64,000 nucleotides of DNA, from positions 186,001-250,000 of the IMG/VR virus record IMGVR_UViG_3300024239_000011, one strand, 5' to 3'. Numbering within the stretch: position 1 is the first letter of the stretch; every line of letters starts with the position of its first letter. Shown here one piece after another: positions 1,835 through 44,798 of the stretch. The notes beneath the pieces are model-generated. The model was not told the origin of the DNA. It saw only the letters and a program-made list of their open reading frames with translations, and ran no database searches. The position numbers and the translations under genes were made by a program.

Positions 1835-1887
1835 CCCTATGTCAATTTTCCCAACAAGGGCTAAATACTTCTAAATGGGGGTGCCAT

Positions 1888-21193: not shown

Positions 21194-21209
21194 GTTCCCT
21201 ATCTCCTTA

Positions 21210-22625
21210 TTAAATACCTGCCATCTTAATACCAGCGAGCATCTTGAACTGATCGAGTTCGGCATCAAATGTTGCCGTATCGGTCTTTTCGTTCAGCGAA
21301 GCTTCGGTAAGACGGTTGTTTCGGTTTCCAGTGACCGCAACAGGTTTGCGCTGCGGAATGCTGTTGTTTTCGACAAGTTTCTTGCGACCATCCTTACGCG
21401 GACCAGCGGTCTCACCCAGTACAGACGGCAAGTATTTGTGGAACGCATCCTTCAGATTATCAGTACGAACATCTGCAAGGAGTTCTTCCATAATGACGCG
21501 CTTATCACGCGCCAGCGGCTTCAGGCATTCATTGAGTACCTTGGTACGCAATGCATTGTCTTCTGCCTTCTTGATGCGAGACTTAGCTTCCGTAAGAACC
21601 ATTTGCTGCTTCTTGACGGCACTAATAGCCTCTGCAAGTTTCTGTTCCACCCCAGCCTTCTCGTGCTGAAGCTTCTTAATTTCGGTACCTTCTGCAAGGT
21701 ACGACGCCATGTATTCAGCGGCGAAAGCCTCGAAAATACGACGACCGAAATTGTTCTCGCGAGCAGCCTTCAAGTCGTCACGGAACTGGGACATTTCTGC
21801 CTTCAGGGTGGACTCGATAGTTTGTTCAACGAGGGTGGCCGCACGCTTGATGAACGCGCTACGGGACTCTTCCAGCTTCTTCTTACCTTCAGCAACCAAT
21901 TTGACACGGGATTCCACGAGTTGCTTTTTGTCCTCGTTGAATTCCTTCATTTCATTGGTCAACTGCTTCAATACGAAGCTTTCTAGTGCCTTGGTACGTT
22001 CTTTAAGCTGCTTGTTGTAGCCAATCTTGGCTTCGCGAAGCTGCTTCTCCATCTTGACGCGCTGTTCTTGCAGAAGACGACGATCCTGAGTGAATTCATC
22101 CATTTCTTCTTTAAGCTGCTTCAGGACAAAGCCCTGTAGCACAGCGGTATGCTCAGACACTTTCTTCTTGTAGAGTGCCTTGGCTTCGGCAACAGCCTTA
22201 GCCAACTTGACACGCTGAGCATCGACAGCCTTGCGGTCATCGGTAAACTCAGCCATTTCCTCAGAAAGCTGCTTCAAGACGAAGGAGTTGAGCAGATCAA
22301 CCTTTTCCTTCAACTTGCTGCGGTAATGTGTCTTTGCTTCTTTGACAGCCTTGTCCAACTTCTCGCGTTGGCGGGAAACCGCCTTGCGATCCATCTGGAA
22401 CTCTTCCAGTTCAGACTTGATGGAGTCAGTAAGCATACGGTCCATGGCTTCAACGAGAAGACCACGGTCGTGGTCATAGCGACGGGCAAACTCTTCGCGA
22501 ACTTCGGTTTCCACCTCTTCGCGAAGGCTCTTCCGCGCCTCGTTCACTTTTTGTTCAATAGCTTCCTGAATTACCTTTTTATTTTCTTCAGAAAGCATTT
22601 TGAACATTTCGTTCTCTTTATCCAT
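21210..22625 (-). CDS. Prohead scaffolding protein (gp22-like)
   Basis: Long coiled coil with FVLKQL..EM.EF..D repeats, between protease and MCP. Confidence 0.85.
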   Translation of the reverse strand: MDKENEMFKMLSEENKKVIQEAIEQKVNEARKSLREEVETEVREEFARRYDHDRGLLVEAMDRMLTDSIKSELEEFQMDRKAVSRQREKLDKAVKEAKTHYRSKLKEKVDLLNSFVLKQLSEEMAEFTDDRKAVDAQRVKLAKAVAEAKALYKKKVSEHTAVLQGFVLKQLKEEMDEFTQDRRLLQEQRVKMEKQLREAKIGYNKQLKERTKALESFVLKQLTNEMKEFNEDKKQLVESRVKLVAEGKKKLEESRSAFIKRAATLVEQTIESTLKAEMSQFRDDLKAARENNFGRRIFEAFAAEYMASYLAEGTEIKKLQHEKAGVEQKLAEAISAVKKQQMVLTEAKSRIKKAEDNALRTKVLNECLKPLARDKRVIMEELLADVRTDNLKDAFHKYLPSVLGETAGPRKDGRKKLVENNSIPQRKPVAVTGNRNNRLTEASLNEKTDTATFDAELDQFKMLAGIKMAGI

Positions 22626-24505: not shown

Positions 24506-25327
24506 ATGAAAGACATCATTCTATTTGGCAATTGCCTGGAAACTTTGGATAGTTTCCCGAACAACACAGCTAGGTGTTGTATTACTAGTCCACCTTATTT
24601 TGGACTACGTGACTATGGGCATGAAGATCAAATCGGGAACGAACAAACCCCATCGGAATACATCACCAATTTGGTTAATGTATTTCGAAAGGTTCGTCGT
24701 GTTTTGACTGACGATGGGATTCTATGGGTGAATATCGGGGACAGTTATGCGGGGGCTGGATACAGCAATCACAAAAACACCGGAGGTGCCCAACGAAGTG
24801 ATGGAGGGAAACAACGGCACCTGATTGGTACCGGATGCAAAAATAAAGACTTGATTGGTATTCCGTGGATGTTGGCTTTTGCATTGCGCGAAGATGGTTG
24901 GTATCTTCGGCAAGACATTATTTGGCACAAACCAAATCCCATGCCGGAATCGGTCAAAGATCGATGCACCAAATCCCATGAATATTTGTTTCTATTGTCA
25001 AAATCTGAGAAATATTATTTCAACAGCGAAGCAATTCGAGAACCATGTGTTGGATCATCACAGCAGCGAAGTCGTAGATCGGTTTGGACAGTGCCAATTA
25101 AACCTTACAAAGGGGCGCACTTCGCAACTTTTCCCCAAAAACTGATAGAACCATGCGTATTGGTCGGTTCCGAACGTGGTGATATAATCCTTGATCCGTT
25201 TATGGGGTCTGGTACAACGGCAGAGGTCGCAATTATACACAATCGTCATTATATCGGTTGTGAGCTAAATGATGGCTATAAACCCCTACAAGACCAACGA
25301 ATCATGTATGCGAGACAAAAAGAATGA
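24506..25327 (+). CDS. DNA methyltransferase (N4-C/N6-A, beta class)
   Basis: TSPPY, IW.KPNPMPES..DR, HFATFP, LDPFMGSGTT. Confidence 0.93.
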   Translation: MKDIILFGNCLETLDSFPNNTARCCITSPPYFGLRDYGHEDQIGNEQTPSEYITNLVNVFRKVRRVLTDDGILWVNIGDSYAGAGYSNHKNTGGAQRSDGGKQRHLIGTGCKNKDLIGIPWMLAFALREDGWYLRQDIIWHKPNPMPESVKDRCTKSHEYLFLLSKSEKYYFNSEAIREPCVGSSQQRSRRSVWTVPIKPYKGAHFATFPQKLIEPCVLVGSERGDIILDPFMGSGTTAEVAIIHNRHYIGCELNDGYKPLQDQRIMYARQKE

Positions 25328-26178
25328 AGCCCTTATACAATGTGAATGGTTTAATGTTCTGGTCGGAGGAAGAGGTTCGCCTTCGGGAAACCATGCGTGA
25401 TACCTTTGCTCGTGGAATTCAAAACATCCTCCTGGCTGAAAACCCGGCATGGCAGTTTGTCTATTTCGAAGGTCCATTGTTAACCCCACGCTCGTTAATC
25501 AACCAGAACTACACCAATGATGATGTGTGGGTTCAAGAAGGTGAAGCCGACAAGCTGCGCTCTCAAATTGCGAAGCTGTATGCAGATGATTACCGCGACA
25601 GCGATTATCAGGACCGCAAGGAAGATCAGATCGCGGAACTGGAAGCAAAGCTTGCCCAGTACAGTGATCTTGTGCTGCGTCCGGAGACGACCCCGACTTC
25701 GTACACCTTCGCGCAACACCTCCTGAACAGCCATAGCGGTCACAAGCCGCCGATCTGCGTATGGCAGGCAGGTAAGAGCTTCCGCCGTGAAGCGGAACAG
25801 CCGACCAAGCACATGCGCTTGAAGGAATTCTACCAACAGGAATTCCAGTGTCTCTATACCGCTGACACCAAAAACGACTACCACACCGCCGTTCTGGAAC
25901 CGGTGCGCAAGATGATTGCCCAGGCAATCCCCTTCCCGACCCGTATTGTCGAAAGTGATCGTCTCCCGGCATACAGCCAGATCACCATGGATGTGGAAGT
26001 ATGGAATGAAGATAAGTGGATGGAGGTCTGCTCCATCAGTCGCCGTACCGATTTCCCAGACAAAGCCCGGTTCACAACCAAGAACGGTACCGTGGAAAAG
26101 GACATTTTGGTTTGTGAAATAGCCATTGGTCTAGACCGCTGTGTATACAACTACAATCAGTGGGCACAGAATGTCTAA
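25324..26178 (+). CDS. Class II aaRS catalytic-domain protein (GlyRS/ProRS-like, no anticodon domain)
   Basis: LRPET, WQAGKSFRRE, RLKEFYQQEFQ, MEVCSIS.RTDF, EIAIGLDR. Confidence 0.8.
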   Translation: MKPLYNVNGLMFWSEEEVRLRETMRDTFARGIQNILLAENPAWQFVYFEGPLLTPRSLINQNYTNDDVWVQEGEADKLRSQIAKLYADDYRDSDYQDRKEDQIAELEAKLAQYSDLVLRPETTPTSYTFAQHLLNSHSGHKPPICVWQAGKSFRREAEQPTKHMRLKEFYQQEFQCLYTADTKNDYHTAVLEPVRKMIAQAIPFPTRIVESDRLPAYSQITMDVEVWNEDKWMEVCSISRRTDFPDKARFTTKNGTVEKDILVCEIAIGLDRCVYNYNQWAQNV

Positions 26179-28242: not shown

Positions 28243-30018
28243 ATGCGAGAGCTTAATGTAGCTCTTGCCCAGTTGAACCCCAAGGTGGGTGACATCGCGG
28301 GCAATCTGAGCAAGATTCTGACCACCCGTCAGACCAATTCCAACGTCGATCTGATCGTCTTCAGCGAGTGCGTGTTGACCGGCTATCCGGTTGAAGACCT
28401 CGTGCAGCGCCCCGCCTTCATGAAGGCGGTCATGGCGGGCATCGAAGAACTGCGCGCCGCCATCGCGGGCACCGATGGTCCCGAGATCATCTTCGGCACT
28501 CCCTATCTCGAAGGCGGTAAGGTCTACAACGCCGCCATCTACGTCGCCCGGAACGGCAAGGTTCAGGTGCGCTTCAAGTCCGAGTTGCCGAACTACGATG
28601 TGTTCGATGAAGTGCGCAACTTCACCCGCGCCATCCCCGCCGACAACCAGACCTTCCGCATCGGTGATTATCATGTCGGCATGATGATTTGCGAAGATGG
28701 CTGGTACCCGCGCGTTTCCGAAGCCCTGTACAAGGGCGGTGCCGACATCATCTTCTGGATCAACGGCTCGCCGTTCTGCCAGGGCAAGGACCAGCTTCGC
28801 AAGGAAGTCATGGCGCAGCGCGCCAAGGAATGCCCCGGCACCCCGATCCTGTACGTCAATCAGGTCGGCGTTCAGGACGACATCGTGTTCGACGGCGCTG
28901 GTTTCGTTAGCGACCGTGAGGGCAACATCGTCGCCCAGCTTCCGGCGTTCGAGGAAAGCGTGACCGCGTTCAAGCTGGTCAATCACACCAAGAACACCGA
29001 AGTCAGCCTCGACCCGAACGCCCGTTCGCAGGCGTACCCGAGCGAGGACGAGGCGATCTACCGCGCCCTGATGCTGTCGCTGCGGGATTACGTGGAGAAG
29101 AACCGCTTCCCCTATGTGGTCCTGGGTCTGTCGGGTGGCATCGACTCCGGTCTGGTCGCCGCGCTCGCTGCCGATGCTCTCGGTCCCGACCGCGTGTGGG
29201 CAGTTCGCCTGCCGTCGCAGTGGACTTCCGACGAGTCCAACGATCTGGCAACCGAACAGTGCCGCCGCATGGGTATCCGTTGTGACACCATCGCTATCGC
29301 GGAAGCGGTTGCGGTGCTGGAAAACAACATCAACACCCTGGCGCTGTCCGATCTTCCGTTCCCGTCCCGTGACCCCAAGGGTCTGGCGGAAGAGAACGGT
29401 CAGTCCCGTGAACGCGGTCAGACCCTCATGTGGCTGTCCAACAAGTTCGGTCCCATGGTGGTGTCCACCGGCAACAAATCCGAGTACAGCACCGGCTATG
29501 CCACCCTGTATGGCGACATGTGCGGCGGTTACGCCTTGCTCAAGGATGTGTGGAAGCTAGACGTGTTCGCGGTCGCTAAGTGGCGCAACGAAAACCAGCC
29601 CATCGGCAGCCGTTTGCCCCGTGGTCCGAAGCAAACCCTGGAAGTTATCCCGGCGCGTGTGATCGAACGCCCGCCGACTGCCGAACTCAAGCCGGGTCAG
29701 TCGGACGAAGAATCGCTCATGCCCTATGACTTCCTCGACCCGCTGCTGATCGCCATGGTCGAAGACGAAAAGAGCAACGATGACACCGCCCTGATGCTGC
29801 TGGAACGCTTCGGCGCCGTTCGCAACTGGTGCGACGACGTGGACAAGATGCGGCGTCTGCTGGACCTTGCCGAGTACAAACGGCGGCAGGCAGCGCCGGG
29901 TCCGAAAATCACCCGCAAGTCCTACGGCAAGGGTCGTCGCTACCCGATCACCAATGGCTTCGTGGAAGTCTGTTCGGCGGATGTTCGGGCGCTGGTCGAA
30001 AGCAAGATGACCACCTGA
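28243..30018 (+). CDS. nadE: Glutamine-dependent NAD+ synthetase
   Basis: Nitrilase domain (ALAQLN..VGD, E..LTGY, K..LPNY.VFDE, ICED.W) plus synthetase (GLSGGIDS, STGNKSE...GYATLYGDM, PPTAEL, AEYKRRQA). Confidence 0.97.
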   Translation: MRELNVALAQLNPKVGDIAGNLSKILTTRQTNSNVDLIVFSECVLTGYPVEDLVQRPAFMKAVMAGIEELRAAIAGTDGPEIIFGTPYLEGGKVYNAAIYVARNGKVQVRFKSELPNYDVFDEVRNFTRAIPADNQTFRIGDYHVGMMICEDGWYPRVSEALYKGGADIIFWINGSPFCQGKDQLRKEVMAQRAKECPGTPILYVNQVGVQDDIVFDGAGFVSDREGNIVAQLPAFEESVTAFKLVNHTKNTEVSLDPNARSQAYPSEDEAIYRALMLSLRDYVEKNRFPYVVLGLSGGIDSGLVAALAADALGPDRVWAVRLPSQWTSDESNDLATEQCRRMGIRCDTIAIAEAVAVLENNINTLALSDLPFPSRDPKGLAEENGQSRERGQTLMWLSNKFGPMVVSTGNKSEYSTGYATLYGDMCGGYALLKDVWKLDVFAVAKWRNENQPIGSRLPRGPKQTLEVIPARVIERPPTAELKPGQSDEESLMPYDFLDPLLIAMVEDEKSNDDTALMLLERFGAVRNWCDDVDKMRRLLDLAEYKRRQAAPGPKITRKSYGKGRRYPITNGFVEVCSADVRALVESKMTT

Positions 30019-30082: not shown

Positions 30083-30937
30083 ATGAATAAATTCGCAGCT
30101 AAAACAAAAGCAATACCATACTCCGATACAGAGATAGAACGTCTTCGGGTGTTATGGGTTTCGGGTTCTATGGAAGAAATAAAAGAAGCATTTCCTAACC
30201 GCTCTTTGATTGGACTTGGACAGAAAGCTAAAAGTCTGGGTTTGGAATGTAAAGTTGAACGCGCCAGACGTGGTGATCTGTCCGTATTATTGGATAAATC
30301 ACTAACATCATTTTACTGGCTCGGTTTTATACTTGCCGATGGACATTTCACCAAAACAGGGCAATTAGTCGTTGCATTAATGGAAAAAGATAAAAATCAC
30401 CTTGAACATCTTGCTCAATACCTAAAAACAACAGTCAAATATCCATATAGGCGAGAAAAAGAATACAAAAAGAGGACATCATTAATTTCACCATCAGAAC
30501 AACAATTAAGATCAGTTGTTCGAATAACAGTACAAGACAAAGAAATAGTAGATCAGATCAATTTTTTATTAGGATTGCCATCTTCGAGAAAGACATACAA
30601 CCCTCCTACTAAGTTAGACGACTTGAATACAGACGAAATTACGGCTCTGTTTATAGGTTTCTTTGATGGGGATGGGTCATCAAGTTATAGTTCAATAGAG
30701 GGGTGTGTTCGGAAATCAGCAAGACTTGAAAATCATATTTCGTGGAAACCAGTTTTTGAAATCTTTAGAAATAACAATTTAATACACAACGCTATAACAC
30801 ACAAAAATAAGAATACCGTTTCCGGACATCCTACGAAAACTACTATGATGCGGTTATTAGCGTTCGCCACTGAGTATAAGTTACCAATTCTAATTCGGAA
30901 ATGGTCAATCTGGTTTGACGAAAGCAACTTAAACTGA
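30083..30937 (+). CDS. LAGLIDADG homing endonuclease
   Basis: YWLGFILADG and LFIGFFDGDG motifs; AT-rich island between GC-rich nadE and pncB. Confidence 0.9.
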   Translation: MNKFAAKTKAIPYSDTEIERLRVLWVSGSMEEIKEAFPNRSLIGLGQKAKSLGLECKVERARRGDLSVLLDKSLTSFYWLGFILADGHFTKTGQLVVALMEKDKNHLEHLAQYLKTTVKYPYRREKEYKKRTSLISPSEQQLRSVVRITVQDKEIVDQINFLLGLPSSRKTYNPPTKLDDLNTDEITALFIGFFDGDGSSSYSSIEGCVRKSARLENHISWKPVFEIFRNNNLIHNAITHKNKNTVSGHPTKTTMMRLLAFATEYKLPILIRKWSIWFDESNLN

Positions 30938-30966
30938 TATACTTTTGCTAATTGGAGGATCAACAC

Positions 30967-32397
30967 ATGACCAATTTTGCAGATCGTATTCTTCGTCCAG
31001 AAACGAACGATTATCCTGTTCGGAATTTGACAGATATCGATTTCTATAAATTTAGTATGGGGCAGTTCATTTTCCAAAACTACAAGGGCGTCCGCGTCCG
31101 CTTCGGTCTGATCAATCGCGAGCAGAAAATTCCGCTGGCGCGCATCGTGGATGAAGCGGAACTGCGCGCCGCGCTCGATCACATCTGCACGCTGAAGATT
31201 CGACGCACCGACCTGTCCACTCTGCGTGGTATGGACGTGTACGGGCAGAATATGTTCTCGAATGACTATCTGGCGTTCCTGGCTGATCTGCGCCTGCCGA
31301 CCTACGACCTGAAGCGAGTGGGCGATCAGTACGAACTTTTCTTCGAGTGCGAATGGGCGGAAGTCACGCTGTGGGAAACCATCGCGATGGCTGCCATCAT
31401 GGAATTGTACTATCGCGCTCTGATGCGGAAGCTGCCCAAGCGCGAACTCGAAAACATGTACGGCATGGCGGCGAACAAGCTGTACCGCAAGCTGCTGCGT
31501 ATCAAACAGCACGGCGGCATCCGCCTCGCTGATTTCGGTCAGCGTCGCCGTCACAGCTTCCTGTGGCAGCGTTACGCCATTGACATGGCGAAAGACGTGC
31601 TGGGTGAGCAGTTCACGGGTACCTCGAACACCTACATGGCGTTCGGCGCTGACTTGAATCCCATCGGTACCAACGCGAACAAACTGCCGATGGTGGTGAC
31701 CGCGCTCAAGATGATCGAGGCGCTGAAGGGCGGACTGTCCCGCGAAGACATCATCCCGCTGGTACGTGGCGCTCAATACACGGTGCTTGACCAGTGGGAG
31801 CAGATGTACGGTTCGGGTCTGCGGATCATCCTGCCCGATACCTACGGCAGCAAACAGTTCTTCGCCAACATGTCGGCTGATCAGGCGCGACGTATCGCCT
31901 TCGATTGGCGTGGCATCCGCCAGGACTCTGGCGACCCCGTGGCGGAATGCTGGATGTTCATCAACTGGCTGAAGTCGCAGGGCGTCGCCAATCCGAAGAA
32001 GGCGGGCAAGGTCTGCATTTTCTCGGACGGTCTGGACGTGAAGCTGGACGGTGCTTCGGGTGAACCCGATATCATCGAGCTTTACGAAACGTTCAAGGAC
32101 GAAATCAACACGCCGTTCGGCTGGGGTACCAACTTTACCAATGACTTCAAGGGCTGCCTGTCCTGTGCCGATGATCTGGTGCCGGGTCTGGAAGACTTGG
32201 GGCTGAAGTGGAAGGACGTGTTCAAGGGCTTCTCGCTGGTCTGTAAGGTCATCGCGGTCATCTATGACGGCATCAAGGTCGGTGCTGTGAAGCTGTCGAA
32301 CAACATTCTGAAGGCGACCGGCGCTAAGGAAGATGTGGCGGAATACATCCCCATCTACGGTGAAGACGGTCGCATTGAGCAGAAGGTCAACGTGTGA
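30967..32397 (+). CDS. pncB: Nicotinate phosphoribosyltransferase
   Basis: DIDFYKF.M.Q, TLWET, DFGQRRRHSFLWQ, GTSN, LPDTYG, R.DSGDP, IFSDGLD, FGWGTN.TND, VKLS. Confidence 0.93.
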   Translation: MTNFADRILRPETNDYPVRNLTDIDFYKFSMGQFIFQNYKGVRVRFGLINREQKIPLARIVDEAELRAALDHICTLKIRRTDLSTLRGMDVYGQNMFSNDYLAFLADLRLPTYDLKRVGDQYELFFECEWAEVTLWETIAMAAIMELYYRALMRKLPKRELENMYGMAANKLYRKLLRIKQHGGIRLADFGQRRRHSFLWQRYAIDMAKDVLGEQFTGTSNTYMAFGADLNPIGTNANKLPMVVTALKMIEALKGGLSREDIIPLVRGAQYTVLDQWEQMYGSGLRIILPDTYGSKQFFANMSADQARRIAFDWRGIRQDSGDPVAECWMFINWLKSQGVANPKKAGKVCIFSDGLDVKLDGASGEPDIIELYETFKDEINTPFGWGTNFTNDFKGCLSCADDLVPGLEDLGLKWKDVFKGFSLVCKVIAVIYDGIKVGAVKLSNNILKATGAKEDVAEYIPIYGEDGRIEQKVNV

Positions 32398-32528: not shown

Positions 32529-33473
32529 CTAAACAATAATACCCCTCTCTACTAAAATTTGGTAGAATTTGTGCTTGTGGGGATACAATATTCTTATTAA
32601 TTCTATACCATTATTAGCACAATACTTTGTTTTCACATCATCGCGGTATTGCGTATCACGTAAAGATTTTTCCCCTCCCCAATGACCGACAGGGCGGAAA
32701 TGTTGTGCTCCATCATACTCAATAACGGTATGAATACTTGGTAAATAAAAATCAAATCGTAACGGATATCCCGTTGATGGGTTTCGACAATCATCAAATG
32801 TTTTTTGAAAAACATACGCAATATTATTATCATCCAATATTCTCATAAGGCGAATTTCCGCCACAGAACTACTTTTACATTTAGGGCACCCATTCCCGTT
32901 TAAATGATGTCGTGGCGTTTGTTCAAAAATACCGTGATGCGGGCAGTCTATTTGCACCCTTGTATAATCATTTACGTATGACACATAGGAATAGTTGTAA
33001 AACTGCCCATGTATCACGTTGGCTCTTTTACCAAATATTTCAGCCGTTAAAGATTGTTTCTGCGCAGTTTTACGATCACCACATCGGGGACAACCATATC
33101 CATGTGAATGATTATCGGGTGATTGTTCGAAAACACCATGTAACGGGCATTTTATTTTTACTTTTGTGCGTGCATTCTTATACTCCACAAGGTCATATTG
33201 ATAAAACCCTTCATGAATGCTCGTAGATTTGTTGATAAACTCAATTGATTTCTTTTCTATATTTTTCCCTTTATTGCGCACACTACTAGCACAGCGAGGA
33301 CAACCTTGACCTTGTAGATGATTATCAGGTCTTTGAGTAAATTCGCCGTGTACCCGACATGTAATTACCACCGGGGTCTTATTGTTGATGTAGTTAGACT
33401 TATCATAGCTATATTTGCCGTCATGAACAGATAGTGCCAACCCAACAAACCATTCAGTATCCCGTTTTTGCAT
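32529..33473 (-). CDS. Free-standing homing-type endonuclease (Zn-finger repeats plus Vsr-like nuclease)
   Basis: Three H...Y.Y....Y....V.I.C..HG.F.Q.P..H..G.GCP.C repeats; LRFDFYLP...IEYDG.QH. Confidence 0.8.
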   Translation of the reverse strand: MQKRDTEWFVGLALSVHDGKYSYDKSNYINNKTPVVITCRVHGEFTQRPDNHLQGQGCPRCASSVRNKGKNIEKKSIEFINKSTSIHEGFYQYDLVEYKNARTKVKIKCPLHGVFEQSPDNHSHGYGCPRCGDRKTAQKQSLTAEIFGKRANVIHGQFYNYSYVSYVNDYTRVQIDCPHHGIFEQTPRHHLNGNGCPKCKSSSVAEIRLMRILDDNNIAYVFQKTFDDCRNPSTGYPLRFDFYLPSIHTVIEYDGAQHFRPVGHWGGEKSLRDTQYRDDVKTKYCANNGIELIRILYPHKHKFYQILVERGIIV

Positions 33474-33543
33474 AGTTGCCTCACAAACCATCATGTGCTA
33501 TTATTTAGCAAAATTAGCACATGACAGTTCAAAAGGTCGCCAC

Positions 33544-34884
33544 ATGTCTTCCCGCGCCAACACTGATTACACGTTTTTTTGGAAATCCGATTCGCCTTTC
33601 AGCAATTGGCATCCATCTGAATTTGTATTGCCATTCCCTTGGCATTTAATCGATCTCACACGGGGTAATGCGATTCACCGTCCAGCGGTGAAGGCACTAT
33701 TCTCCATGGGCATCACTTTTGATGATCTCAAGTTCAACTGTGTTGAAAAATATATGATGTTCGCCAAAAGTCTTCTCATGGGCGATTATATCACTGCTGC
33801 TAAAATTCTCAAAGAAACTCGCCCAAATGAATTAAAACGATTGGGGCGGGAAGTATCGCCGTGGAACGAAGAATTATGGATCGAACATCGTTTTAATATC
33901 GTGTTCGACGCATGTTGGGCGAAATTCACCCAGAATGAGCATCTACGTGATGAAATGCTTAGCACGGGAACTACAAAATTTGCGGAGGCGAGTCCCAAGG
34001 ATGCTATTTGGGGTCTTGGTATTTCCGTTGACGATCCACGCATTAATACGCCAGCCGTATGGACCGGTTTAAATCTTCTCGGGCAGGTTCTTGACAAGGT
34101 GAAAGCTCGCCTGCGCACCCAACCGGTGATCAAGCGCAAGATTCTGCCCTGGATGTCCGTCCAGAAGCGGGAACCGCGTGTCGCCCTAATGGTCGGACGG
34201 TTCCAGCCACTTCACCGTGCGCACTGCATGGTCATCGAGCGCATGCTTCAGGACAATGACGTGGTGATCATTGGTATCGGGTCGGCGCAGGAATCCAAAA
34301 CCCAACGCAACCCGTATCACGCCGAAATCCGCATGGCGATGCTGAAAAACGTTTTCGGCAACCGTATCGTGACCATGCCGTTGCGTGACTTGGGGTCGGG
34401 GGTTCACACCCAGGAATGGATTACCAACGTCATCGGTAAATGCCATGAAATGCGCCTACCGACGCCCAATCGCTACTACTGCGGATGCCATGACGATTCG
34501 CTCTGGTACCAGGGCTACTTCAGTGGCACCAACCCGAAGAAAATCGAGGTTGGTGACATGGTGAAATACGTCCACACCAGCGAAGACCGGGAACTGATCA
34601 TCCTCGAACGGACGATGAATCACTACCCGAGCGCCACGCGCATCCGTGAGTACATGAACCTGCGAATGGAAGACTGGAAGTGGTGGATTCCCGAGGTCAA
34701 CCACGTCCTAGTGGAAGCTAACTATCCAGCGCAGTTCCGCACCGCGCTGGAAGTCGAAGACTTCAGCGAGTTCACCGATATCCAACCGGAAGGTACGTTT
34801 GTGTACCAACCGACCAATGGCGAAATCTATCAAAAAATCAATGGTGTCTACCAGCCCAAGCGCGAATCGGTGGTCATCGAGTAG
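33544..34884 (+). CDS. NADAR domain fused to NadM-type NMN/NaMN adenylyltransferase
   Basis: FSNW, E.YMM..K, K.LGR.V, KF.QN..L...L.TG...EASP.D.IWG.G...G.NLLG (NADAR); GRFQPLH.AH...IGIGSAQ...RNP...R..M, SAT.IR (cytidylyltransferase-like). Confidence 0.88.
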   Translation: MSSRANTDYTFFWKSDSPFSNWHPSEFVLPFPWHLIDLTRGNAIHRPAVKALFSMGITFDDLKFNCVEKYMMFAKSLLMGDYITAAKILKETRPNELKRLGREVSPWNEELWIEHRFNIVFDACWAKFTQNEHLRDEMLSTGTTKFAEASPKDAIWGLGISVDDPRINTPAVWTGLNLLGQVLDKVKARLRTQPVIKRKILPWMSVQKREPRVALMVGRFQPLHRAHCMVIERMLQDNDVVIIGIGSAQESKTQRNPYHAEIRMAMLKNVFGNRIVTMPLRDLGSGVHTQEWITNVIGKCHEMRLPTPNRYYCGCHDDSLWYQGYFSGTNPKKIEVGDMVKYVHTSEDRELIILERTMNHYPSATRIREYMNLRMEDWKWWIPEVNHVLVEANYPAQFRTALEVEDFSEFTDIQPEGTFVYQPTNGEIYQKINGVYQPKRESVVIE

Positions 34885-34929
34885 TAAATGGGGCGGGAAT
34901 TATCCCGCCCCAAATTATGAGAACAAAAC

Positions 34930-35277
34930 ATGACACAAGTTGCTCTGTATCAAGGGTTCCCGGTTTCCAAGGATGGTTCTGTCGAGGGCGAACTTCCGCC
35001 AGATGTGAAATCGCGTTTTCCATCGGACCCTGATAATATCGACAATTACGATCTGGTACAGGCAGGTTACGAAGTCGTTATTCTATGTATTGATGAAGAC
35101 TCTGATTTCCCCATTGACGATGAGGAAGATCGGAATGAAGAAGGCGAAATTTATCTCGACGTAGCCCTTCAATGGTGCCCGGAACCTCCACCCGGTGAAG
35201 GTTGGAAATTGGCATGGAAAACCCCTCACGGGGATGATTGGAACGTCGTTTGGTGGAGAAAGAAAAATGACAGTTAA
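34930..35277 (+). CDS. Acidic hypothetical protein
   Basis: 115-aa ORF overlapping the next start. Confidence 0.55.
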   Translation: MTQVALYQGFPVSKDGSVEGELPPDVKSRFPSDPDNIDNYDLVQAGYEVVILCIDEDSDFPIDDEEDRNEEGEIYLDVALQWCPEPPPGEGWKLAWKTPHGDDWNVVWWRKKNDS

Positions 35278-36133
35278 AGATCGAGCAATAGGCTCATTTA
35301 TTGGTTTGGCTATTGGCGATGCCCTCGGCACCCCAGCAGAATTCAAGATGCCCGGCGAATTCGAACCCATCACTGGAATGCGCGGTGGTGGGGCTTTTCG
35401 TTTGAACCCTGGCGAATGGACCGACGATACCAGTATGGCGTTGTGTATTGCGTATTCACTGTCCGACAAAGGTGATTTTGTCCCGTCTGATATCATGAAA
35501 CGGTTTGTGAACTGGTGGCAGCACGGCTACGCTTCCCACAACGGGCGCTGCTTTGATATTGGTACCACCACCCGCAAAGCCCTTCAGCGGTTCATAAAGA
35601 CCGGTGAAACGTCAATGCCGGATACAGACCCGATGGCGTCTGGAAACGGCGCCATCATGCGATTCTCACCCATCGCCACGTTCTATCACGACAACATCGA
35701 CCGCATGGTTGAGGTGGCAATTTCCCAGGCAATGATGACCCATCCAACCCCCGAGTCTATTCGGGAGGCGGAAACCTTTGCCCGCATCATTCACGGGGCA
35801 ATGCACGGCAAGACGAAGGAAGAACTTATCGACTGCGAGAAATTCAAGAAAATCCCGGCTGATATGGTCCCGGCAACTGGTTACGTTGTGCATACGATGT
35901 TTGCTGCACAATGGGCAGTTGCCAATTCGGATAATTTCTGCGATGCTCTACTCAAGGCAGTAAACCTAGGGGATGATGCTGATACCGTTGGTGCGGTTAC
36001 CGGTCAAATTGCCGGTGCATTGTACGGCGTCTCTACAATCCCCAACGAATGGCTGTCGGTGCTTGCATGGCGCGAACAATTGTTCGATCTGGCGGAAAAA
36101 CTATACTCAGGTCAACCCAACAACGACATGTGA
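35267..36133 (+). CDS. ADP-ribosylglycohydrolase (DraG/ARH family)
   Basis: GLAIGDALG...EF, GEWTDDT, FDIG, SGNGAIMR, VNLGDDADT.GA. Confidence 0.95.
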   Translation: MTVKDRAIGSFIGLAIGDALGTPAEFKMPGEFEPITGMRGGGAFRLNPGEWTDDTSMALCIAYSLSDKGDFVPSDIMKRFVNWWQHGYASHNGRCFDIGTTTRKALQRFIKTGETSMPDTDPMASGNGAIMRFSPIATFYHDNIDRMVEVAISQAMMTHPTPESIREAETFARIIHGAMHGKTKEELIDCEKFKKIPADMVPATGYVVHTMFAAQWAVANSDNFCDALLKAVNLGDDADTVGAVTGQIAGALYGVSTIPNEWLSVLAWREQLFDLAEKLYSGQPNNDM

Positions 36134-36137
36134 AATA

Positions 36138-36455
36138 ATGGCAAAACATAAACATATTTTTTACGCAAATGAAGACGAAGGAATGATTGATCTTCTTGAG
36201 TTTTTTGGTTGTTATGAGGATATCGAGCATATTTTCGATATCGAAATAGCTTGCGCAGAAAAAGACGGAACCCCGCTATTTCATAAAGATAATCCAAATG
36301 GATTTCATGAAGAATATGATGGAGTTGTATTAGACACTATCTTCAGAAATGCGGACACCAAAGTAATTCATAGGCTTGGAATCAAGGGTTATAAATTTCA
36401 AGTAACGTATGATGATGAAACCGAAGAATTTATTAATGCGAAAATATCCAGATAA
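36138..36455 (+). CDS. Hypothetical protein
   Basis: AT-rich ORF from ATG 36138. Confidence 0.5.
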   Translation: MAKHKHIFYANEDEGMIDLLEFFGCYEDIEHIFDIEIACAEKDGTPLFHKDNPNGFHEEYDGVVLDTIFRNADTKVIHRLGIKGYKFQVTYDDETEEFINAKISR

Positions 36456-36569
36456 CCACTTGCCCAACAATTGAAGGAGACGGTTCATCCTCGTTCCGTC
36501 GGGTTTGATGTTGTTAGAGCAACATCAAACCCCGCTTGTATATTTATCTCGAACGAAAGGGGGCGCGTT

Positions 36570-37086
36570 ATGGCACGGATTGCCGTTTACGCGGGAAGTT
36601 TTCGACCCGATTACCTATGGTCATTTCGACATGATCGAGCGTGCGTTGCCGCTGTTCGACCGGCTGCATGTCACAATTGCGGTCAATCCCGATAAGGATA
36701 GCGGGCTACTCTCGCTCACGGAACGTCGCGAACTGATCGAAGCATGGCTCGCCACCAAAGACTTCAAGGACAAAGTGGTGGTGGTCGATGCGGTCAAGGG
36801 AATGTTGGTAAAGCATTGCCGCCATATTGGCGCCCATTTCATCGTGCGCGGATTGCGTGCGGTATCGGACTTCGATTATGAATTTCAGGTCTACGGCATC
36901 AACCGTGATCAGGCACCAGACATCCAAACCATCTGGTTCCCTGCGTCGCCCGAATTCATGTTCGTGTCCTCGAAAACGGTCAAGGGCATCTTTAAGAGCG
37001 GTGCCGACATCAGCAAGTACGTTCCGCCCCTCGTGGAACAGAAAATGCGCGAGCGCATTCAACAGACTACCTACGAGGTGGTATAA
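36570..37086 (+). CDS. coaD: Phosphopantetheine adenylyltransferase, split by a +1 frame change at ~36600
   Basis: MARIAVYAGSF (frame 0) joins FDPITYGH (frame +1); IVRGLRAVSDFDYE, FVSS..VK. Confidence 0.88.
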
Positions 37087-37098
37087 GGACTACGGATT

Positions 37099-37887
37099 AT
37101 GCTGGACAATCTTCTCTACCAAGAAAAGCTTCTGAGCCTTGAAGAGGAACAGGCGCTTACCAACCGTATGAATGACAAGAAGGCGTTCGACACGCTGATA
37201 TTGGCACATGCGCCCTTGGTCGGGAAGATTGCGCGTAATTTCAAGGGCTATAATCTGCCCATGGACGACCTCATTTCCTGCGGGTTCACTGGACTTGTTT
37301 ACGCTGCCCATCGGTTCGATCCGACCCGTGGCGCTCGGTTCGCAACCTATGTAGAAGACCGCATTCGTTACGAAATTGCCGAATACGTTCTTAAAAACCT
37401 GCGACTGATGCGAGTGGATGTATCAGGTGCGCATCGGAAGTGCTTCTACGCAATTTCCCGTATGCGTCGAAAACATAACATACTTCGTTTCACCGAAGAA
37501 AATGCCGGTCCCGCAGCCGAGGAACTTGGGGTGGAACCCCGTATCCTTGTGGATATGGAGGATCGACTTCAGGCGGTTACTTCACTTGACACCCCTGTGA
37601 AAGATGGTAGTTCCACCACCCTAGCCGACCTTCTGGTAGACGGTTCGACCATGACGACCGTGGAAGACAATCTTGCTGAACGCCAGGAATACAACCAACA
37701 GTGGTGCTGGGTTCAAGAAGCCATCACTACGCTGAATGACCGAGAACAAGACATCATCCGTCAACGCAAATTGATGGATGAACCGCCTACCTTAAATGAA
37801 TTGGCGGTGAAGTATAACGTTTCGTCGCAGCGTATCCGCCAACTCGAAACACGTGCGATGGAAAAAATCATCAGCTATTGCATTTAA
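37099..37887 (+). CDS. RpoH-like sigma-70 family factor
   Basis: LV.KIA..F.GY.LP..DLI..G..GL..A..RFDP.RG.RFATY; LNDREQDII..R...P.TL.ELA..Y.VS.QRIRQLE.RA. Confidence 0.9.
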   Translation: MLDNLLYQEKLLSLEEEQALTNRMNDKKAFDTLILAHAPLVGKIARNFKGYNLPMDDLISCGFTGLVYAAHRFDPTRGARFATYVEDRIRYEIAEYVLKNLRLMRVDVSGAHRKCFYAISRMRRKHNILRFTEENAGPAAEELGVEPRILVDMEDRLQAVTSLDTPVKDGSSTTLADLLVDGSTMTTVEDNLAERQEYNQQWCWVQEAITTLNDREQDIIRQRKLMDEPPTLNELAVKYNVSSQRIRQLETRAMEKIISYCI

Positions 37888-37897
37888 AGGTGTTCCA

Positions 37898-38953
37898 ATG
37901 AGAATTCTCCTAGTACGGCATGGTGAATCCGCTGCCAACGCCAACAAAGACCTCCACGCCAGCATGGCGGATCACGACATCCCGCTATCCGAGCGTGGTT
38001 TGTTGCAGGCGACCGAAGCAGGTAAATTCCTAAACGCATTCTTGAACGAACGTTTGCGTGCTGAAAAAGATATGGGAACGTTTGCGTTAGAAGCATTTGG
38101 GATGAAATCGCCTCTTGGTGATGGGCTTAAATTACCCAAAGTCCGGCTATGGAATAGTCCCTATCGGCGTACACGACAAACGGCGAAGAATATCCTCGCT
38201 CAAATTACACCGAGCGAATTCAACATCGATCAACGTGAAAACAGCCGTTTATGCGAGCAGCAATTTGGGTTGTTCGATGGTATTCCCGATGATGAACGTC
38301 ATCTCCATTTCCCGGACGAAGCCGCACACTATAAAAAGTGTGAGGACCACGGCGGGCATTATTGGGCACGTATGCCGTTGGGCGAGAGCCGGTTCGACGT
38401 GGGCAACCGCGTATATCAATTCTTTGGTAGCGTCCACCGCGATAGCGAAAAACACGGCATCGACACGATCATCGTGATCTGTCACGGCATCACCTTGCGG
38501 GTATTTGTTCAGGAATGGCTCCATTTGTCCCCGGAATGGGTCAATGCCGAACCGAACCCAGATAATTGTTGGGTCCGCTATCTCAGCCAGGGAGAGGATG
38601 ACACTCATGGGCGTCCCGGTAATTGGATCGACCATGGCTATATTTTCACTGGGGAAGGACAGTCCGGTCTTTGGCCAAAACAACGAGCGCCACGCCACGG
38701 ACATCCATGCACGGGCGAATGCAATGGCGCTGCCACTTGGTCATCCAATGGCTGCGGTGCCTGTGGGATCACCGAACACGAGAACGAAACCTGGGAACAG
38801 ATGTCTACCCAGGAACGGTCCCGTATTTTCGCGGACATCACCCTTCGTGATATTACCCCGGCATTGAAAGCGTGTGGGACGTGTCGGTTCCAAGAGGGGT
38901 GTAGCAAGCCGGAAAAACGGGACAATTACTGCAACGAATGGGCAGCATCATGA
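37898..38953 (+). CDS. Histidine phosphatase with Cys-rich C-terminal extension
   Basis: LVRHGES, SPY.RT.QT, L.EQ.FG, GES, CHG. Confidence 0.9.
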   Translation: MRILLVRHGESAANANKDLHASMADHDIPLSERGLLQATEAGKFLNAFLNERLRAEKDMGTFALEAFGMKSPLGDGLKLPKVRLWNSPYRRTRQTAKNILAQITPSEFNIDQRENSRLCEQQFGLFDGIPDDERHLHFPDEAAHYKKCEDHGGHYWARMPLGESRFDVGNRVYQFFGSVHRDSEKHGIDTIIVICHGITLRVFVQEWLHLSPEWVNAEPNPDNCWVRYLSQGEDDTHGRPGNWIDHGYIFTGEGQSGLWPKQRAPRHGHPCTGECNGAATWSSNGCGACGITEHENETWEQMSTQERSRIFADITLRDITPALKACGTCRFQEGCSKPEKRDNYCNEWAAS

Positions 38954-39176
38954 CCGAGAAACCGTTCGTCAGCAGATGTTGTGAGGGCGAGGAATGTTCT
39001 TGCGGTGCGCCTGCTGAACATAAAGTCGAAGAAGTCATCTTCTACGACGACCCGCACCAGCAACGTCACCCGTTCACCGCATACGTTTGCCACAAATGTT
39101 TCGTCCACATCATGGGCAACGCGGCAAAACGTCCCGAAGAGCTATAAACGGAAAGGGCGGCAATTTGCCGCCCTTT

Positions 39177-39449
39177 TCATTTTCCGTCCGGTGGCGTGTC
39201 GTACACGATCAGGATTGTTTCAGCCAGATTGGTCAACGCCTTAAGCGTACTGGTTTCAAACGCGGTGCCTTGGTGAGTCAATGCCAGCGTTGCAACCATT
39301 TTTAGCACACCGATCACTTCCGGGGAATAATTGAACGGCGGTTTGGCGTAATGGTTGGCATTACCAATCAGTTGCTCGATCAGCGGAATGACCTCTGCGT
39401 TGGGTTGCTCCAACGCAGACAGAAAATCAAAACATGAATCAGACAGCAT
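39177..39449 (-). CDS. Hypothetical protein
   Basis: 90-aa ORF ending at the hairpin 39151-39178. Confidence 0.45.
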   Translation of the reverse strand: MLSDSCFDFLSALEQPNAEVIPLIEQLIGNANHYAKPPFNYSPEVIGVLKMVATLALTHQGTAFETSTLKALTNLAETILIVYDTPPDGK

Positions 39450-39484: not shown

Positions 39485-40027
39485 TCAGGCAGCTTCCTTT
39501 AACAGCAGAGCATACACCTTGGCAATCTCTTCCTCAGTATGGGCAACGCCGCCCGCATTAAGATCGATGTACCACTGAAGCACTTCCTTGCGGGTCTTCA
39601 GATTGTTGATATGGACGGTGAAGGCGCAATCGTGCGGCAGCTTGTCCGCATACTCGCCATACAGCCGACCGAACGCCGGGATTTCGTTCGCCAGGAACCG
39701 GCGAACTGCCTGAAGGCGCTGTTTACCATCAACCAGCACCAATTCGCCCCGGAAATCGTCGTTCCAGCGGGGATGATTGAAGTACAGGTCGCGGCTGGAC
39801 TGCCCGCCGCGCAGGATAAATTCAACATAGCGAATCTGCTGCTTCTCGTTCCACACATGGGCGCGTTGGAAATCAGGGTCGAGGACGAGAACCTGCTGAC
39901 AACCCGGATCGTCCTGATCCGCCAGCCACCCTTCCAGATAGCGCCACGACTGCTCGCACTTGTACGCGGCAGACCGGGTGAACTGCGGGATGTCACGGAA
40001 CCTGTTGAACGGACCCAAGGCAGTCAT
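39485..40027 (-). CDS. DUF262 (GmrS/ParB-like) protein
   Basis: PDFQR.HVW...Q...YVE, VDGKQRL, LN.GG. Confidence 0.85.
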   Translation of the reverse strand: MTALGPFNRFRDIPQFTRSAAYKCEQSWRYLEGWLADQDDPGCQQVLVLDPDFQRAHVWNEKQQIRYVEFILRGGQSSRDLYFNHPRWNDDFRGELVLVDGKQRLQAVRRFLANEIPAFGRLYGEYADKLPHDCAFTVHINNLKTRKEVLQWYIDLNAGGVAHTEEEIAKVYALLLKEAA

Positions 40028-41183: not shown

Positions 41184-42161
41184 ATGAAACTGAACACCCG
41201 CATCGCGCCGTCTCCGACTGGTTTCATGCACATCGGGACTGCCCGCACTGCTTACTTTAATTTTTTGGCTGCTAAAGCCAGCGGCGGCACTTTCTATCTG
41301 CGCATTGACGATACCGATACTGACCGTGAGGTTGAAGGTGCAGTGGACGTGATCCTGAACAGCTTGTCATGGTTGGGGTTGGATTACGATTCAGAGGTAA
41401 TCTACCAGTCGCAGCGGAAAGATGTTTATCGTCAATGGGCGCGATGGTTGATTTCTATCGGCGCTGCCAAGGAACTCGACAATGGCGCGATTGCCCTGGT
41501 ATGGCAGGATTACATGCCGCGCGTGTGGCATGACGACATCGCGGGCGAAATGGCAATTTCCGACAAGGAAGCCGAACAAATCGACGGGCTGATCCTGATG
41601 AAGGGTGGCGACAAGCTTGGTCAGCCGATCTACCACTTCGCATCCGTGGTCGATGACTGGAACCGAATCAACTGCATCATTCGCGGCACCGATCACATCT
41701 CGAACACTGGCAAGCAGCTTGCCATCTGGGCAGCTATGAACCGGTTCTGTGAGATTCAGAACGAGCGAAAGACGGAACTTGACCCGGTTCATGGTCACTT
41801 CCAAACGCCGCCCGAGTTCCCGCGCATTGCCCATGTGGGTTTGATCCACAAGAACAAGAAGAAAATGTCGAAACGGGACGCGGTGACCGACCCGACGATC
41901 TTCATGGCGTACTATCAGGAAAACAACTATGAACCGGAAGCAGTTCTGAATTTTCTATTGCGTATGGGATGGGGTCCGACTGTGGATGACAAATCCACTA
42001 CTACTCTCCCACGTGAACGTGCAGTGGAACTGTTCCTCGAAGGCGGTAAGATGCGGTCGGCACCCGCAAACTTCGATATGGCGAAATTGGAATCGTTTAA
42101 TCGCAAGTATAAAGGTATGCGCGAGAATGCCCTGAAAGCGACAGTCAATGCAGTGGCTTAA
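41184..42161 (+). CDS. GluRS/Glu-Q-RS-like class I aaRS catalytic domain
   Basis: TRIAPSPTG.MHIG.ARTA, LRIDDTD, Y.FASVVDD, IRG.DH, KMSKR, LLRMGW; no anticodon-binding domain. Confidence 0.88.
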   Translation: MKLNTRIAPSPTGFMHIGTARTAYFNFLAAKASGGTFYLRIDDTDTDREVEGAVDVILNSLSWLGLDYDSEVIYQSQRKDVYRQWARWLISIGAAKELDNGAIALVWQDYMPRVWHDDIAGEMAISDKEAEQIDGLILMKGGDKLGQPIYHFASVVDDWNRINCIIRGTDHISNTGKQLAIWAAMNRFCEIQNERKTELDPVHGHFQTPPEFPRIAHVGLIHKNKKKMSKRDAVTDPTIFMAYYQENNYEPEAVLNFLLRMGWGPTVDDKSTTTLPRERAVELFLEGGKMRSAPANFDMAKLESFNRKYKGMRENALKATVNAVA

Positions 42162-44249: not shown

Positions 44250-44798
44250 ATGGAAGACGATCTCGTAAAACACAGCAAATTCATGAGCCTCATCTTGCGG
44301 CATAAACCCGAGAAAGTAGGTCTTACCCTCGGGGATGGCGGTTGGGTCAATACGTTTGACCTCATCAAGGCGATGAATGACCACAATTACCCGATCACTC
44401 TCGACACCCTCATTACAGTCGTTGAAGACAACGACAAGAAGCGTTTCTCCTTCAACCATGACAGGTCGATGATACGGGCTGCCCAAGGGCATTCGGTTGA
44501 TGTGAAGCTGGACTATCGCCCGAAACGCCCGCCTGATCGACTGCATCACGGTACCGTCTACGCCTTCCTGAAGTCGATCAAGCAGACCGGCTTGGACAAG
44601 GGCAAGCGCCATGCAGTGCATCTGAGCGAGGATTATGCGACGGCGGTCAAGGTTGGATCGCGCCGTGGTGATCCGGTCATCCTGATCATCAAAGCCAAGG
44701 AAATGCACGAGGACGGCTATTCGTTCTTCCAGAGCGACAATGGCGTTTGGCTGACCGACTTCGTGTTACCGAAGTACATCATCTTCCCCAATGACTGA
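44250..44798 (+). CDS. kptA: NAD+-dependent RNA 2'-phosphotransferase (Tpt1/KptA)
   Basis: SK.MS.ILRH.P, K.RF, IRA.QGHS, HGT, R..VHLS, S.NGVWL. Confidence 0.95.
   Translation: MEDDLVKHSKFMSLILRHKPEKVGLTLGDGGWVNTFDLIKAMNDHNYPITLDTLITVVEDNDKKRFSFNHDRSMIRAAQGHSVDVKLDYRPKRPPDRLHHGTVYAFLKSIKQTGLDKGKRHAVHLSEDYATAVKVGSRRGDPVILIIKAKEMHEDGYSFFQSDNGVWLTDFVLPKYIIFPND

Follow-up and report, generated by a model that had tools for sequence, protein, structure and literature searches.

A NADAR-NMNAT Fusion Gene in a Giant Phage

We analyzed a gene encoding a NADAR domain fused to an NMNAT domain, together with its surroundings, in a stretch of 64,000 nucleotides (the window, G000:C1:186001-250000) of the virus record IMGVR_UViG_3300024239_000011. 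The record is 543,035 bp long and complete according to CheckV. The fusion gene is preceded by genes for two enzymes of NAD+ synthesis, NadE and PncB, and followed, at some distance, by a gene for an ADP-ribosyl(arginine) hydrolase (ARH). The open reading frames (ORFs) and other features of this region are, in window positions:

28243-30018, plus strand: NadE, glutamine-dependent NAD+ synthase of 591 aa (Pfam CN_hydrolase, 196 bits, and NAD_synthase, 100 bits)
30083-30937, plus strand: LAGLIDADG homing endonuclease-like ORF between nadE and pncB (Pfam LAGLIDADG_3, E 1.2e-6)
30952-32397, plus strand: PncB-type nicotinate phosphoribosyltransferase of 481 aa (Pfam NAPRTase_N and NAPRTase)
32529-33494, minus strand: DUF723/treble-clef zinc-finger/DUF2726 ORF, divergent from the fusion gene (Pfam)
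33544-34884 (alternative start 33493), plus strand: NADAR-NMNAT fusion gene (Pfam, PDB matches, AlphaFold2 model)
34890-34911, plus strand: GC-rich hairpin without T-tract, just past the fusion stop codon (read from the sequence; not called by the terminator scan)
34930-35277, plus strand: acidic ORFan of 115 aa, with 11 nt of overlap between its end and the ARH start
35267-36133, plus strand: DraG/Tri1-type ARH of 288 aa (Pfam ADP_ribosyl_GH, PF03747, 236 bits)

An earlier note, made from the DNA sequence, had described an N-terminal NADAR joined to an NMNAT and a DraG/ARH gene downstream, and Pfam, PDB matches, and the AlphaFold2 model confirm this arrangement. The longest ORF (33493-34884, plus strand) encodes a protein of 463 aa, P0001. 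Translation more likely starts at 33544 (Met18), as that note had it, than at 33493: a Shine-Dalgarno-like AAGG stretch lies upstream of 33544, the model shows disorder for residues 1-22, and the 33493 start overlaps the beginning of the divergent gene. Residues 28-208 (33574-34116) match the Pfam NADAR domain with 150.5 bits (cut-off 35.1) and also pass the NCBIfam model TIGR02464 of the YbiA N-glycosidase (136.8 bits, cut-off 73.7). After a disordered linker (residues 214-223), the NMNAT domain covers residues 229-418 (34177-34746), and a small β-rich tail (419-463) ends the protein. In this C-terminal part, residues 232-287 match Pfam CTP_transf_like (42 bits, cut-off 21), and the top sequence matches in the PDB are archaeal NMNATs (1f9a, 1ej2) and NadM-Nudix enzymes (2qjo, 2qjt). 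On these sequence grounds, we assign the C-terminal half as an NMNAT and as no other cytidylyltransferase. The AlphaFold2 model (mean pLDDT 87.4, pTM 0.57) consists of two well-folded domains with the disordered linker between them; in Foldseek comparisons with the PDB, the NMNAT half aligns to 1hyb with a target-normalized TM-score of 0.79 and the NADAR half to 8bau with 0.70.

Eight NADAR residues (E85, K92, R119, W129, R133, E165, D170, and W173 in P0001 numbering) are invariant in all three fusion proteins that we identified (see below). They correspond to E43, K50, R79, W89, R93, E125, D130, and W133 of the 8bau protein in the numbering of PMC11543638, from which their roles are taken; the 8bau chain numbering in our alignment runs +2 relative to that paper. 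The NMNAT motifs GRFxPLHRAH (235-244) and S/A-T-R-x-R (380-385) are likewise present in the three fusions. The features typical of NadM/archaeal-type enzymes, GRFQPxHxxH, SxTxxR, and a nucleotidyltransferase Rossmann fold, are thus all found in the NMNAT half, and the catalytic motifs of both halves are intact. With NCBIfam models, the NMNAT half scores at best 66.9 bits (cut-off 127) and 59 bits (cut-off 181), and only its first ~70 residues align. Its sequence places it in a divergent clade with an insertion.

The residue at the position of 8bau E125 distinguishes NADAR subfamilies, with Glu in the YbiA type, Asp in DarT1-linked NADARs, and His in the T4 type (PMC11543638). The fused NADAR carries Glu165 there and is of YbiA type; the Asp or His and the PF08010 match characteristic of DarG1-type or AdfN-type proteins are missing, and its similarity to T4 gp30.3 is not significant. 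Its identity to NADARs from Escherichia phages of 148-151 kb, perhaps belonging to the Bas60 (Vequintavirinae) type, is ~32%. Among the fusions, the NADAR halves are 41-48% identical and the NMNAT halves 64-74%; the former diverge faster, with the catalytic residues kept.

A Putative Preiss-Handler Cluster

NadE matches the NCBIfam equivalog PRK13981 with 620.5 bits (cut-off 479). PncB reaches 302 bits with PRK05321, under the cut-off of 379; this phosphoribosyltransferase was first read as NadV, which was ruled out by its PncB-type Pfam and NCBIfam matches. With NadE and PncB upstream of the fused NMNAT, genes for the three enzymes by which a Preiss-Handler cluster is recognized (PncB, adenylyltransferase, and NadE) are found together. 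A scan of the phage's own genome detected one PF08719 NADAR, one NAPRTase-family gene (PncB-type), and two cytidylyltransferase-like genes (the fusion and CoaD), as well as three stand-alone Nudix genes and one Macro gene, all outside the NAD+ island. It detected no isochorismatase (PncA), no NAD-dependent ligase, no PRPP-synthetase-like Adps (Pribosyltran_N), by which NARP1 would be recognized, and no NadV/NAMPT; the NadV partner and the Nudix on NMNAT that mark NARP2 are both missing. The gene at 36505-37086 was first read as NadD, which was ruled out since NCBIfam identifies it as CoaD. Because the other cytidylyltransferase-like gene is CoaD and NadV is lacking, only the fused NMNAT could carry out the adenylyltransferase step that connects PncB with NadE. 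CoaD belongs to the genes downstream of ARH, which are:

36138-36455 (longest frame from 35973), plus strand: ORF of 105 aa without assigned function (gene call from L010; no library matches)
36505-37086, plus strand: CoaD, phosphopantetheine adenylyltransferase (NCBIfam coaD, 145 bits, cut-off 103)
37099-37887, plus strand: sigma-70 family factor (Pfam Sigma70_r2 and r4)
37853-38953, plus strand: histidine phosphatase with His_Phos_1 and DUF1289 (Pfam)
39150-39178, plus strand: strong intrinsic-terminator-like hairpin with T-tract (13 pairs, 8 of them G-C) at the end of the plus-strand gene block
44250-44798, plus strand: KptA/Tpt1, a NAD+-consuming RNA 2'-phosphotransferase (Pfam PTS_2-RNA, 166.7 bits)

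The KptA/Tpt1 gene lies ~9 kb downstream and is also found in the sister contig (L008 and L010). That the histidine phosphatase acts on phosphorylated ADP-ribose derivatives is speculation. No promoter was assigned, as a sigma-70 promoter scan performed no better than on shuffled sequence. The NAD+ cluster is interrupted by the LAGLIDADG ORF and the DUF723/zinc-finger ORF, of which the latter is probably a mobile endonuclease-like gene as well. Homing-endonuclease-like genes are scattered in the NAD+ island, and their positions differ between this phage and the sister phage represented by L008.

Conservation of the Cluster in Related Phages

The phage belongs among large T4-type phages. The window carries T4-type genes for the major capsid protein (19994-21268, minus strand) and the portal protein (47833-49593, minus strand); in the nearest isolates, Sinorhizobium phage Phosso, Agrobacterium phage Atu_ph07, and Pseudomonas phage PA5oct, the portal protein is 54.5%, 51.8%, and ~51% identical, respectively. 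The stretch is present in subsurface and soil metagenome runs, all of one study, and none of the deposited phages searched has near-identical DNA.

The sister contig L008 encodes a fusion protein, P0004, that is 53% identical to P0001, and a NadE that is 64% identical. Its gene order is NadE, an HNH_repeat/DUF723 gene (938-2017, minus strand), PncB, a small ORF, the fusion, an unrelated 194-aa ORF, the sigma-70 factor, and the His_Phos_1/DUF1289 phosphatase, with KptA further on. No ARH, acidic ORFan, or CoaD is present in L008, and the 194-aa ORF at the position matching CoaD is unrelated to it. The LAGLIDADG ORF has no equivalent at the same position in L008 or in contig L075. Since NadE, PncB, and the fusion are shared by this phage and L008, we consider these three genes as the conserved unit.

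The nearest plain NMNAT, P0009 (196 aa, 53% identical), is encoded in a nadE-pncB-NMNAT operon on L075, and this contig's NadE and PncB both share 66% identity with their phage counterparts. L075 is probably cellular, given its sulfate-permease, DMT, and ferric-reductase-like neighbors and its GC content of 37%. As its NMNAT is plain, the NADAR was presumably added in phages. Another relative, the P0026 NMNAT (46% identical), is found on the T4-like contigs L076 and L077, where its neighbors encode NadE, an isochorismatase (PncA-type fold), and an RNA ligase. The island of phage Phosso comprises NadE, PncB, four small ORFs, Nudix, NMNAT, and isochorismatase; its NMNAT is 34% identical and of the same clade, with the Nudix gene directly upstream. 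In P0023 and P0043, two relatives from metagenomes, an N-terminal Nudix domain is fused to the NMNAT. The statement of the earlier note that NadM is usually joined to Nudix therefore applies to the relatives of this very enzyme, be it as an N-terminal fusion or as an adjacent gene. Gene neighborhoods consistently link the clade of this NMNAT to the deamidated (nicotinate) route, and sequence comparison indicates that the slot before the NMNAT is taken by Nudix in the relatives and by NADAR in this lineage. An independent link between NADAR and NMNAT exists in Synechococcus phage B3 and one IMG/VR contig, where NadM-Nudix, NADAR, and NAMPT genes are neighbors; neighborhoods of this cyanophage type were noted before (PMC9503650).

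Compared with known systems, the fusion resembles the NadM-Nudix enzymes (Synechocystis slr0787, Francisella NadM, the phage KVP40 type, and the NMNAT of NARP2) in combining the same NMNAT domain with an ADP-ribose-handling partner and, in phages, in its location in a NAD+ cluster. In those enzymes, however, the partner is a C-terminal Nudix pyrophosphatase and not an N-terminal NADAR N-glycosidase, and the phage systems pair with NadV, whereas the fusion pairs with PncB and NadE, that is, with the deamidated route. The pncB-nadD-nadE clusters described bioinformatically in jumbo phages are likewise clustered, occur in phages of >500 kb, and start from nicotinate, but they use NadD (PMC11662467); here, a NadM-type enzyme is fused to NADAR, and homing-endonuclease-like genes interrupt the cluster. 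E. coli YbiA, the riboflavin-intermediate N-glycosidase of TIGR02464, shares with the fused NADAR the model match and the subfamily-defining Glu. The context differs: the fused NADAR stands among NAD+ synthesis genes, with no riboflavin genes nearby.

The ARH Cassette

The longest ORF of the ARH gene is 35195-36133; translation probably begins at the ATG at 35267, which is preceded by GGAG. The protein scores 300 bits with the NCBIfam Tri1 model (cut-off 490) and 192 bits with the DraG model, in both cases under the equivalog cut-offs. It aligns over its full length to Tri1 (PDB 6dre, 254 bits) and also to a Thermus ARH and to DraG. The metal-site motifs GDALG, DDT, TH, and DDxDT are all present in the sequence and in the 6dre alignment. 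As the alignment covers Tri1 residues 70-365, the phage ARH does not have the N-terminal extension of ~65 residues with which Tri1, an ADP-ribosylarginine hydrolase conferring type VI secretion system immunity in Serratia, occludes Tre1. Tri1 and DraG, its best matches with conserved dinuclear metal-site motifs, have the ADP-ribosyltransferase (ART) partners Tre1 and DraT. No such partner was found for the phage ARH, a single-copy gene in this genome: among the families scanned, ADPrib_exo_Tox and DarT are absent, and tblastn detected no T4 Alt homolog.

The fusion gene and the ARH gene are not direct neighbors, since the hairpin and the acidic ORFan separate them. The latter (P0003; pI ~4.05, with 27 Asp and Glu against 9 Lys and Arg) has no match in Pfam, PHROG, NCBIfam, or PADLOC and no homolog among 5.8 billion sequences in a word-indexed search, which tests just candidates sharing 5-residue words. 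It is recorded on a contig of 869,618 bp, which is larger than the 543-kb record, and its size and charge recall phage inhibitor or mimic proteins. Because L008 has neither gene, we regard the ARH and the acidic ORFan as a cassette inserted specifically in this phage, with the hairpin marking its boundary behind the fusion gene. The earlier note had counted the ARH as part of a unit with the fusion; the arrangement of NadE, PncB, fusion, and sigma-70 without ARH in L008 speaks against any conserved unit of this kind. ARHs ~40% identical are encoded by enterobacterial and Xanthomonas jumbo phages. In Serratia phage BF (L011) and Xanthomonas phage XbC2 (L012), the ARH homolog lies ~4 kb upstream of an NMNAT/NadR gene, so that a loose proximity of ARH to a NAD-salvage gene recurs outside this phage.

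Rarity of the Fusion

Queried with the protein as well as with a profile of 60 sequences, the word-indexed search retrieved three fusion proteins, P0001, P0004, and P0005. They come from different samples and agree in architecture and in a conserved linker, which excludes an artifact of assembly. This is also supported by four runs of one study, which contain 93-100% of the sampled 31-mer words of the window. An exhaustive HMMER search of 1.84 billion representatives gave no further full-length match among the best 150; ten multi-domain matches from this list were rejected as NADAR repeats or as SLOG-, Nudix-, DUF4326-, or Macro-NADAR proteins. A scan of IMG/VR and of 185,579 species genomes revealed NADAR-only loci and one adjacency case, with no fusion. 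The domain-architecture search advised in the earlier note thus yielded three orthologous fusions, none of them cellular, and the possibility raised there of a housekeeping architecture common in cellular genomes is not borne out in those searched. We claim rarity for this orthologous fusion and not for the domain pair, since the ESM Atlas contains other clusters with both domains (see below). No description of a NADAR-NMNAT fusion was found in the literature searched.

A Second NADAR and the DarTG1 Question

A tblastn search with T4 gp30.3 (AdfN) identified a 36%-identical match outside the window, at G000:C1:67775-68209 (minus strand). It corresponds to a PF08010 NADAR (161 bits, G000:C1:67781-68185, minus strand) that makes up the C-terminal half of a protein of 301 aa (L073:1477-2382, minus strand). 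The N-terminal ~155 residues of this protein have no family match, and the next gene is weakly nucleoside-2-deoxyribosyltransferase-like. AdfN strips the ADP-ribose added by DarT1 off phage DNA (bioRxiv 10.1101/2024.07.11.602962). The presence of a gp30.3/AdfN-type NADAR elsewhere in the genome therefore lowers the probability of the fused NADAR being a dedicated anti-DarTG1 factor; the two NADARs could serve different transferases.

All NADARs assayed to date hydrolyze ADP-ribosyl (ADPr)-guanine in vitro (PMC11125620; bioRxiv 10.1101/2024.07.11.602962). E. coli YbiA does so without rescuing cells from DarT1 (PMC11125620), and divergent non-T4 phage NADARs (Bas32 and Bas60) neutralize DarT1 and allow phages to grow again on hosts with DarTG1 (bioRxiv 10.1101/2024.07.11.602962). 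Like AdfN, NADAR-Bas32, and NADAR-Bas60, the fused NADAR is phage-encoded, has the conserved catalytic Glu and Lys, and lacks a cognate DarT. Unlike AdfN, to which it shows no significant similarity, it is joined to an NMNAT. The reversal of DarTG1 action proposed in the earlier note is thus reduced to one possibility among others, weakened by the YbiA-type Glu and by the separate gp30.3/AdfN NADAR.

Possible Roles of the Fusion

We consider it probable, from gene content and sequence, that the fusion provides the adenylyltransferase step of a phage Preiss-Handler NAD+ pathway, to which an ADP-ribose eraser has been added. PncB would convert nicotinate and phosphoribosyl pyrophosphate (PRPP) into nicotinate mononucleotide (NaMN), the NMNAT half would adenylate NaMN, possibly also nicotinamide mononucleotide (NMN), and NadE would amidate the resulting nicotinate adenine dinucleotide (NaAD) to NAD+. 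The cluster appears to be inherited within giant T4-type phages like Phosso and Atu_ph07, and it also exists as an operon on the probably cellular contig. In this lineage, a NADAR of YbiA type, a predicted ADP-ribosyl N-glycosidase, has been fused N-terminally to the NMNAT where relatives have a Nudix ADP-ribose pyrophosphatase, such that an enzyme rebuilding NAD+ would be made together with one freeing ADP-ribose from N-linked adducts. The ARH most likely takes ADP-ribose off arginine in proteins. The gene set might keep NAD+ available during infection, against NAD+-depleting defenses and for users of NAD+ such as KptA, and might also erase ADP-ribose marks. Of these functions, NAD+ replenishment is well supported by the predicted genes, and ADP-ribose erasing is plausible. 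For the NADAR half, ADP-ribosylated bases (guanine N2) in nucleic acids are a possible target to which we give somewhat less than an even chance, and soluble N-glycosidic ADP-ribose derivatives a slightly less probable one. The pathway and the fusion are a rare form of modules already described in giant phages and no new type of system; the novelty lies in the fusion and in the replacement of Nudix by NADAR that it implies. NAD+ rebuilding by phages is established as a counter-defense for NARP1-3 (bioRxiv 10.1101/2024.02.11.579819; PMC13464706), and surveys of NADAR and ARH genes in phages exist (PMC9503650, PMC7824862). Of the counter-defense unit proposed in the earlier note, the replenishment of NAD+ gains strength from NadE and PncB upstream; the inclusion of ARH in a conserved unit is not supported, and a role against DarTG1 is one possibility among others.

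Several points weigh against this interpretation. We infer every activity, the preference for NaMN, and any role in counter-defense from the sequence, and the latter presupposes host defenses that are assumed. Archaeal NMNAT and NadM models rank on top among NCBIfam matches of the NMNAT half, and every equivalog cut-off is missed. NadM-type enzymes classically prefer NMN. Because of these sub-cut-off scores and this preference, the NaMN step is deduced from gene context only. In the absence of a phage PncA, the host must deamidate the nicotinamide released by NADases. Given the pTM of 0.57 and the disordered linker, the two halves may merely be co-expressed and function independently. Finally, the ESM Atlas holds two other PF01467+PF08719 clusters, with 120 and 102 members and a weak score of 0.77, which may be other cytidylyltransferases or independent fusions.

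We also considered other explanations. The NADAR half might replace the Nudix of NadM by hydrolyzing small N-glycosidic ADP-ribose derivatives while the NMNAT rebuilds NAD+. Its substrates would be, for instance, cyclic ADP-ribose (cADPR) isomers and ADPr-base or ADPr-amino-acid signals originating from host immunity or from phage enzymes, and the effect would be the destruction of signals or toxic by-products. The position of the NADAR in the Nudix slot of its relatives, the NADAR embedded in cyanophage NadM/NadV clusters, and the match to the YbiA small-molecule N-glycosidase model are in agreement with such a function, as is the argument from genomic context that phage NADARs mostly act on soluble ADPr derivatives (PMC9503650, PMC7824862); the separate AdfN-type protein could then take the DNA role. 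Cleavage of a soluble ADPr signal has, however, so far been demonstrated for no NADAR, Nudix and NADAR co-occur in cyanophage clusters and are therefore not simple substitutes, and the genome retains its three stand-alone Nudix genes and the Macro gene. We regard this explanation as rather unlikely, though it deserves consideration. Lower still is our estimate for an orphan DarG1-like antitoxin that would form, with the ARH and the NMNAT, one dedicated anti-ADP-ribosylation unit, in which the NADAR cleans DarT1-modified guanines of phage DNA, the ARH cleans proteins, and the NMNAT refills the NAD+ consumed by ARTs. The intact NADAR catalytic residues, the neutralization of DarT1 by the Bas32 and Bas60 NADARs (bioRxiv 10.1101/2024.07.11.602962), and the ~32% identity to Escherichia phage NADARs, maybe of Bas60 type, argue for it, and the fast evolution of the NADAR half with its key residues kept would fit a conflict-facing role. 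Yet this phage already encodes a gp30.3/AdfN-family NADAR elsewhere, the fused NADAR has the YbiA-type Glu instead of the DarT1-linked Asp (PMC11543638), YbiA itself gives no DarT1 rescue (PMC11125620), the sister phage has no ARH, so that the three functions form no conserved unit, and the presence of DarTG1 in the host is an assumption.

The cluster might also be purely metabolic, supplying NAD+ to a very large, slowly replicating phage, with the NADAR as a YbiA-like damage-control N-glycosidase for by-products of riboflavin or of pyridine nucleotides, and with the ARH as an unrelated passenger. Consistent with this, an orthologous nadE-pncB-NMNAT operon exists on the probably cellular contig, the NADAR part matches the YbiA-type model, the neighboring CoaD suggests a general supply of cofactors, and clusters of this kind have been read as NAD+ supply for phage enzymes (PMC11662467). 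What makes it improbable in our view is that no cellular genome searched has the fusion, that the cellular-type operon has a plain NMNAT, the NADAR having thus been gained in phages, and that the conflict context of phage ARH, NADAR, Macro, and Nudix genes is well documented (PMC9503650). The fusion could, lastly, be a two-in-one counter to NAD+-based immune signaling, in which the NADAR destroys a host-made N-glycosidic ADP-ribose signal or adduct, such as a Thoeris-type histidine-ADP-ribose (His-ADPR), a cADPR isomer, or base-linked ADPr, and the NMNAT, PncB, and NadE rebuild the NAD+ consumed by the effector; we give this proposal little credence. If true, it would amount to a fourth NAD+ reconstitution pathway, based on Preiss-Handler enzymes and with a built-in eraser, and would assign a function to the large group of non-DarT NADARs.

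We know of no role for most NADARs outside DarT operons. The fusion to a NAD+-forming enzyme, in the slot that relatives fill with an ADP-ribose pyrophosphatase, gives a clear genetic hint at such a role. Together with the independent cyanophage neighborhoods of NADAR, NadM, and NadV, it indicates that one NADAR clade works beside NAD+ salvage. The fusion also offers a compact construct with which to ask whether a Preiss-Handler phage cluster overcomes NAD+-depleting defenses as NARP1-3 do, and which ADP-ribose linkages the NADAR cleaves. As the components are all of known kinds and similar clusters have been catalogued, we consider it an incremental lead and no surprise.

Other Genes in the Window

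Further genes of the window lie outside the NAD+ cluster. A gene for a pyridoxal phosphate (PLP)-dependent ornithine/diaminopimelate (DAP)/arginine decarboxylase (15996-17138, plus strand) is located near the capsid gene. Two truncated aminoacyl-tRNA-synthetase-like genes were identified: one encodes a 284-aa class II core (25324-26178, plus strand), and the other a 325-aa protein with the class I Glu/Gln catalytic domain alone, similar in size to GluQ-RS (41184-42161, plus strand). The class I gene is kept in L008. At 39485-40027 (minus strand), a 180-aa ORF has a GmrSD_N (DUF262) domain and further matches in PADLOC (NsnA and PD-T4-2_A); a relative of a defense nuclease domain, no larger than a fragment, is here carried by a phage.

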